A DNA stretch of 64,000 nucleotides from IMG/VR virus record IMGVR_UViG_3300042515_001753, positions 1-64,000 of that record. One strand, given 5' to 3'. Below are positions 37,237 through 37,439 of this stretch, one piece after another. The translations under genes were made by a program, and so were the position numbers. A model generated the notes under the pieces. That model ran no database searches. It saw only the letters and a program-made list of their open reading frames with translations, and was not told the DNA's origin. Positions within the stretch are counted from its first letter, which is position 1; each line of letters opens with the position of its first letter.

Positions 37237-37309
37237 TGGGTCGTAGAGGAGTTGAACCTCTCTCTACCGGTTAAAAGCCGGGTGCATAAAACCGATCTGC
37301 CAACGACCC
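37237..37309 (-). tRNA. tRNA-Lys(TTT)
   Basis: Loop CTTTTAA. Confidence 0.9.
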
Positions 37310-37331
37310 AAATAATATGGATAAATATTCG

Positions 37332-37385
37332 GTTGTCTAGGTTCTGGTGGAGAGGCAATCCCTCAACCACTTGATTAGAATACCA
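37332..37385 (-). promoter_or_regulatory. tRNA-array leader: extended -10, boxB-like hairpin, boxA-like element
   Basis: TGGTATTCT, hairpin 37347-37370, AGAACCTAGACAAC 37332-37345. Confidence 0.6.
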
Positions 37386-37439
37386 CCGTTTGGTCTCTGG
37401 GGGGAGATTGGTGGGCACTTAGGAAACTGGTACAGGCAA

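Follow-up and report, generated by a model that had tools for sequence, protein, structure and literature searches.

A cyanophage related to S-PM2 starts its main tRNA gene array with a hairpin followed by a boxA of the type found in the rRNA operons of its hosts, and the exact phage form of this boxA occurs in rrn leaders and rpsJ UTRs of other picocyanobacteria, suggesting that the phage might borrow the host Nus antitermination machinery to transcribe its tRNAs. The stretch analyzed (hereafter the window) comprises 64,000 nucleotides of the IMG/VR virus record IMGVR_UViG_3300042515_001753, a 146-kb record that is about 68% complete, and all its tRNA genes lie on the minus strand. On this strand, an extended -10 element (TG-n-TATTCT, 37385-37377) is followed by the hairpin GTGG-TT-GAGG/GATTG/CCTC-T-CCAC (37370-37347), and then by the boxA CAGAACCTAGACAAC (37346-37332), also written as (C)AGAACCTAGACAAC. 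An A+U-rich spacer of 21 nt (CGAATATTTATCCATATTATT, 37331-37311) separates the boxA from tRNA-Lys(ttt), which starts at 37310 according to ARAGORN or at 37309 (a distance of 22 nt) according to Rfam. The first bases of this spacer (YGAAWA.TTTA) continue the resemblance to the host rrn leader, and RNase P would cut at its 3' end.

The tRNA-Lys gene heads a tight block of 14 tRNA genes (37310-35934, minus strand) in the order Lys, Tyr-like, Asp, Glu, Pro, Phe, Ile, Ser, Met, His, Gln, Leu, Trp and Arg, which is the presumed transcription unit served by the leader, and further tRNAs follow down to 31015. The count of 14 tandem tRNAs given in the initial annotation is right, provided that the divergent tRNA-Tyr(gta)-like gene at 37233-37146 is included, which was missed by ARAGORN but is supported by Rfam and by synteny with S-PM2 tRNA-Tyr. 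This gene, with an odd T-loop, and a tRNA-Ser(tga)-like gene at 31216-31133 are both long-arm tRNA-like genes that ARAGORN missed and that score as weak tRNA-Sec hits in Rfam. Much of the gene order of the block is shared by S-PM2 and S-CREM1, with gains and losses. A gap of 204 nt without any Rfam or ARAGORN hit was observed between tRNA-Ile and tRNA-Ser (36695-36492), an area where S-PM2 has a second tRNA-Ser.

Though all the elements described in the initial annotation were confirmed, its picture needed two corrections. The leader heads the main array and not the whole tRNA region, since tRNA-Arg(tct) and tRNA-Ala(tgc) (37809-37658, minus strand) lie upstream of it and outside the boxA-led unit. 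They are separated from the leader by a cassette (37634-37504, minus strand) with a T4-type late promoter, TATAAATA (37634-37627), and a 33-codon micro-ORF (37605-37504), closed by an intrinsic terminator (37475-37441, a G+C-rich hairpin followed by T6, with the hairpin detected at 37472-37447) that insulates the leader promoter and is conserved in S-PM2 and in relatives. In addition, the leader hairpin is not exceptional by energy alone. It is both the MFE and the centroid structure at -11.5 kcal/mol, with the following boxA unpaired, but it is not significantly more stable than shuffled sequences (z = -1.1). Covariation support for the stem, judged without formal statistics, is also weak, as the stems differ mainly by indels and the outer stem GTGG/CCAC hardly varies.

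The promoter of the leader is predicted only. A conserved stretch ends in CGGTGGTATTCT, the extended -10, and CGGTGGTAT is invariant between the window and S-PM2. Relatives with unrelated upstream sequence still place a sigma-70 -10 element 7-13 nt before the hairpin, either as TGcTATGAT or as TTGACA-17-TATTGT, so the RNA should begin at the foot of the hairpin, with the transcription start predicted at about 37370-37372.

To compare the phage element with that of its hosts, host-type genomes were reached through the psbA fragment of the phage, their rrn operons were located with the Rfam SSU model, and the flanks were read. In Synechococcus WH7803 (the host of S-PM2), RCC307, MIT S9451, MIT S9507 and MIT S1220, the 16S-23S spacer (ITS) has AGCAGAACCTTGACAACTGCATAGG with the boxA CAGAACCTTGACAAC, and the sequence given in the initial annotation as the picocyanobacterial rrn boxA, AGAACCTTGACAAC, is exactly the ITS boxA of all five genomes. 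The rrn leader, about 380 nt before the 16S gene, has CAGAACCTGGACAAC followed by TGAAAAGTTTAGG, with the natural variants GCAC..AAC, GAAC..AAT and GCAC..AAT. The phage 15-mer matches both the leader and the ITS copies at 14 of 15 positions, and differs only at the one position where those two differ from each other. In a sample of 81 genomes of the same family, the exact phage form (15 of 15 positions) is the rrn-leader boxA of one genome (G065), with the ..AAT ending in another (G010), and it is also the rpsJ-UTR copy of two others (G081 and G007). In an alignment the core G.ACCT.GA.AA is invariant. The published cyanobacterial ITS boxA, GAACCTTGAAAA, which is followed by D4 CTGCATA (10.1101/2021.01.08.426015), agrees with the host ITS read here.

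The motif is also specific in the host genomes. The pattern GMACCTNGACAAY hits only the leader and ITS of each rrn operon plus one further conserved place in each of the five genomes, with three stray hits in one genome. This further place is the tufA-rpsJ spacer, 55-75 nt before the start codon of ribosomal protein S10, which is NusE itself, and a conserved hairpin and boxA (G[A/C]ACCT[C/A]GACAA[C/T]) was found in this spacer in seven picocyanobacterial genomes as the only conserved non-rrn boxA. A boxA in front of rpsJ has been reported as a sign of NusE autoregulation in other bacteria (PMC5725501), which supports the motif being the true NusB-NusE site and suggests NusE autoregulation in picocyanobacteria. 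Every host copy is preceded by a hairpin, and in both phage and host the hairpin lies 0-12 nt 5' of an unpaired boxA. In three strains the leader hairpin is CUCC-UGAGA-GGGAG, which is reminiscent of the commonest phage hairpin, GGUY-GAGA-GACC. The hosts encode NusA, NusB, S10 (NusE), NusG and IMPase-family (SuhB-like) proteins, but no Rho, and the S. elongatus control lacks it too. In four of the five Synechococcus genomes, an inositol-monophosphatase-family (SuhB-like) gene lies about 300-500 nt upstream of the rrn leader boxA on the same strand.

The relaxed boxA pattern occurs twice in the 146-kb phage record against 0.33 expected, and the other copy (GAACCTGGAAAAC, 52670-52658, minus strand) sits in a coding-looking stretch with no tRNA nearby and is taken as chance. 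The whole spacer between tRNA-Arg/Ala and tRNA-Lys is 72-79% identical to the corresponding spacer of S-PM2, which has a different hairpin (GGTGGG...CCCACC) and CAGCACCTTGAAAAC. However, the boxA of S-PM2 itself (GCACCTTGAAAAC) differs from each WH7803 site at 2-3 positions. A pattern combining promoter and boxA found 31 IMG/VR loci, of which all 30 with enough downstream sequence have tRNA-Lys 9-22 nt after the motif, heading arrays of up to 22 tRNAs, while the 31st ends 37 nt after the motif. As that search required boxA, the sampling was repeated with an anchor independent of it, namely the DCRYWHI codons of the upstream micro-ORF. Of 76 distinct viral leaders, 70 carry G[A/C]AC[C/A]TNGA[C/A]AA[C/T] with at most two mismatches to the host form, ending 8-37 nt (nearly all 8-22 nt, with 37 nt in one) before tRNA-Lys. 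Two more (the leaders L278 and L293) carry the same recognisable boxA at three mismatches, and of the remaining four, two are tRNA-calling artefacts and two are real exceptions. Most of the sampled relatives form one fairly close clade in which the flanks are conserved too. Nevertheless, boxA persists in sub-lineages where the promoter was replaced (the L245, L277 and L329 types, including TTGACA-17-TATTGT set inside the terminator loop), and at least five stem types of the hairpin were observed, while two of 57 distinct segments (L301 and L312) have lost the hairpin altogether, as is tolerated for rrn boxB, and keep boxA. The phage variants at boxA positions 2 (A/C) and 13 (C/T) are the same ones seen among host leaders.

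Among the four cultured cyanophages with more than 20 tRNAs (PMC9964418), three, belonging to three genera, have the element at the head of the array. In the complete S-PM2 genome the homologous leader is the only hit. S-CREM1 has a terminator, TGcTATGAT, a hairpin and AGCACCTTGACAAT, then 8 nt to tRNA-Lys and 11 further tRNAs, while S-CBWM1, which is outside Kyanoviridae, has GAACCTAGACAAT 7 nt before tRNA-Lys(ctt) and at least 10 tRNAs, and the flanks of both are unalignable. The laboratory systems of S-PM2 with Synechococcus WH7803 and of S-CREM1 with CB0101 both carry the element. However, S-CRM01, with 33 tRNAs, does without it, as do five cyanomyoviruses (S-RSM4, Syn19, RN05-S, S-SRM01 and S-CAM3) whose few tRNAs are embedded among protein genes. 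In T4 and T5, whose tRNA clusters are likewise transcribed by host RNA polymerase as multi-tRNA precursors, no gamma-proteobacterial boxA (GYTCTTTAANA) lies upstream in sense orientation of the tRNA genes. The device therefore belongs to cyanophages with large, free-standing tRNA arrays, though it is not found in all of them. A blastn search of the 85-nt leader against cultured phages found nothing meaningful, because the query is too short and divergent, and in one search only two hits were homologous leaders.

Four strand-specific RNA-seq runs that hold the S-PM2 sequence, presumably from infected cultures, were examined as assembled contigs. The contigs begin at 2896/2897 of the locus L233, about 3-6 nt after the late promoter TATAAATA, and run through the micro-ORF, the terminator and the leader into tRNA-Lys, with one continuing to the third tRNA. 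The adjacent mature tRNA-Arg has zero depth in all runs, which argues that the signal is RNA and not DNA carry-over. Leader-containing precursors therefore exist and some transcription reads through the terminator from the upstream late promoter, but these contigs cannot locate a start at the predicted promoter or separate promoter activity from read-through.

Taken as the transcribed leader of the main tRNA operon of the phage, the segment is built like the leader of the host rRNA operons, and the most economical reading, to which we assign a probability of about 0.6, is that of an rrn-type, N-independent Nus-loading leader. In this proposal, a host sigma-70-type promoter starts the RNA at the foot of the boxB-like hairpin, and host NusB-S10 binds the single-stranded boxA as it emerges and, with NusG, NusA and possibly a SuhB-like protein, stays tethered to RNA polymerase. 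The polymerase would become an rrn-type complex that is fast, resists pausing and termination and chaperones RNA folding through 14 or more closely packed, highly structured, untranslated tRNA genes, after which RNase P removes the leader. As the hosts lack Rho, the benefit cannot be anti-Rho, and should instead be faster elongation, read-through of tRNA-hairpin/U-run pause and terminator mimics (weak terminator-like matches were detected inside tRNA-Leu and tRNA-Ile), and orderly co-transcriptional folding. The interpretation in the initial annotation, that the phage recruits the host Nus complex to transcribe or fold its stable-RNA operon like an rrn operon, is thus supported, in that the match to host boxA and the conservation were strongly upheld, though the transcription start, NusB/S10 binding and any effect on transcription or folding are inferred. 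It is also possible, though more tentative, that lytic cyanophages assemble a complete host rrn-type antitermination and chaperone complex on their tRNA operon with nothing but a copied boxB-boxA leader and no phage antiterminator, which would make phage tRNA synthesis rRNA-like and show that the Nus-boxA system has a Rho-independent core function in stable-RNA transcription and folding. As a further step, the abundant leader would compete with the host rrn and rpsJ boxA sites for limiting NusB-S10, tying expression of the array to the shut-down of host ribosome synthesis.

Other explanations were considered less likely. The element might be a genuine NusB-NusE site used for a different purpose, either as a brake or regulator of the tRNA operon, as boxA is at suhB and probably at rpsJ, or as an abundant decoy RNA that titrates NusB/S10 away from host rrn and rpsJ transcripts during host takeover. 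In the known non-rRNA case of suhB in E. coli, boxA represses rather than promotes expression, boxA sits before rpsJ in several genera (PMC5725501) as it does before host rpsJ here, and the leader lies at the 5' end of a presumably strongly expressed stable-RNA unit. However, suhB-type repression acts on translation and on Rho, whereas the array is untranslated and the hosts lack Rho, and the hairpin-boxA layout directly ahead of stable RNA genes copies the rrn leader and not a 5'UTR, and neither abundance nor titration was measured, so this reading is unlikely. A role in RNA stability or processing, in which the hairpin protects the precursor from 5'-end-dependent nucleases and the A/U-rich single strand guides RNase E or RNase P, is also unlikely as the sole explanation, but could coexist with the main one. 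The predicted position of the hairpin at the very 5' end of the transcript and the A+U-rich spacer before the RNase P site are in its favor, but it does not explain a 13-15-nt identity to a motif that in host genomes is confined to the rrn leader, ITS and rpsJ, and boxA survives where the hairpin is lost and does not vary while the length and sequence of the spacer do.

Very unlikely is a passive relic of DNA captured from a host rrn leader along with tRNA genes, or a chance match without present function. The likeness to the host rrn leader does run about 10 nt beyond boxA, as expected for common descent, and a tRNA-Ala(tgc), as found in the host ITS, lies upstream, but the element is retained at the same place in 70 of 76 distinct leaders and in three genera while promoter, hairpin sequence and spacer were all replaced, and about 0.3 relaxed matches per genome, and about 1e-3 for the exact 15-mer, are expected by chance. 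The reading of boxA as the -35 element of a promoter acting on DNA was rejected. A consensus scan reports TAGACA-16-TATTAT at 37339-37312 with 10 of 12 matches, and many variants read TTGACA. Nevertheless, the start site would fall inside the acceptor stem of tRNA-Lys, relatives with 8-13-nt spacers (S-PM2, S-CREM1, S-CBWM1 and the L245 type) have no -10 at the right distance, conservation extends 5' of the hexamer (G[A/C]ACC) as in host boxA, and the host ITS boxA also contains TTGACA.

The bacterial rrn leader/spacer antiterminator (boxB-boxA-boxC, with the rrnTAC complex of NusA, B, E, G, SuhB and S4) in its picocyanobacterial form shares with the phage element the host-type boxA sequence, the order of hairpin and then single-stranded boxA, and the position ahead of untranslated stable RNA genes, downstream of a promoter that in the phage is predicted. 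The phage element, however, sits on a lytic phage genome and serves a pure tRNA operon with no rRNA, its hairpin lies 0-6 nt from boxA at the predicted 5' end of the RNA, no boxC equivalent is defined, and the anti-Rho rationale of E. coli does not apply. Lambdoid nut sites also contain a host-type boxA next to a hairpin and exploit NusB/NusE to modify host RNA polymerase, but there boxA comes before boxB, the boxB loop binds phage N, and delayed-early mRNAs are the target. In the cyanophage element the order is reversed, the loop is not conserved (GAGA, GAGAGA, GATTG, AAGA and others), the target is a tRNA array in a T4-like lytic phage, and no N-like gene is known in these phages, although N-like proteins were not searched for and the record is incomplete. 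The boxA elements in 5'UTRs of Nus-factor genes (suhB in E. coli and rpsJ in several genera; Baniulyte et al. 2017, PMC5725501) are likewise used outside rRNA operons, and the host copies in the tufA-rpsJ spacer are of this kind and share the exact phage sequence in some genomes, but those elements repress translation and promote Rho termination of an mRNA, while the phage element precedes untranslated tRNAs. Though boxA elements and their use by lambdoid phages are textbook knowledge, how phages express large tRNA arrays is essentially unstudied, and no description of a host-type boxA leader on a phage tRNA array was found in the literature searched, the S-CREM1 paper discussing its tRNAs without mentioning promoters. 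It would be the first phage use of the rrn antitermination signal that we could find without an N-type protein, and the first attached to tRNA genes, and it bears on what Nus/boxA complexes are for when there is no Rho to antagonise.

The micro-gene between the two tRNA groups is itself conserved, with an ORF of 32-34 codons and an invariant DCRYWHI that is intact in 59 of 62 distinct versions from more than 100 viral contigs, although a tblastn search found only S-PM2 among cultured phages. In S-PM2 this stretch is annotated only as an opposite-strand hypothetical CDS (S-PM2p162), which is probably spurious. An Rfam abiF RNA motif (37853-37817, minus strand; 44.8 bits, gathering score 37) ends 7 nt before tRNA-Arg(tct), and in S-CREM1 the annotated abiF motif likewise ends 5 nt before a tRNA (Gly). 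Near-perfect sigma-70 promoters (TTGACA-17-TATAAT) at 35292-35264, 35933-35905, 30990-30962 and 31130-31102 (minus strand) sit immediately after tRNA-Thr, tRNA-Arg(acg) and near tRNA-Pro, so the distal tRNAs and the 494-codon ORF at 35034-33550 may have promoters of their own. A wcaG RNA motif (71 bits), a cis-regulatory RNA known from cyanophages, was also detected at 30390-30288 (minus strand). In addition, psbA (11774-10630, minus strand) is split into exon-like ORFs at 11774-11451 and 11169-10630 with stop codons between them, suggesting one or more introns.
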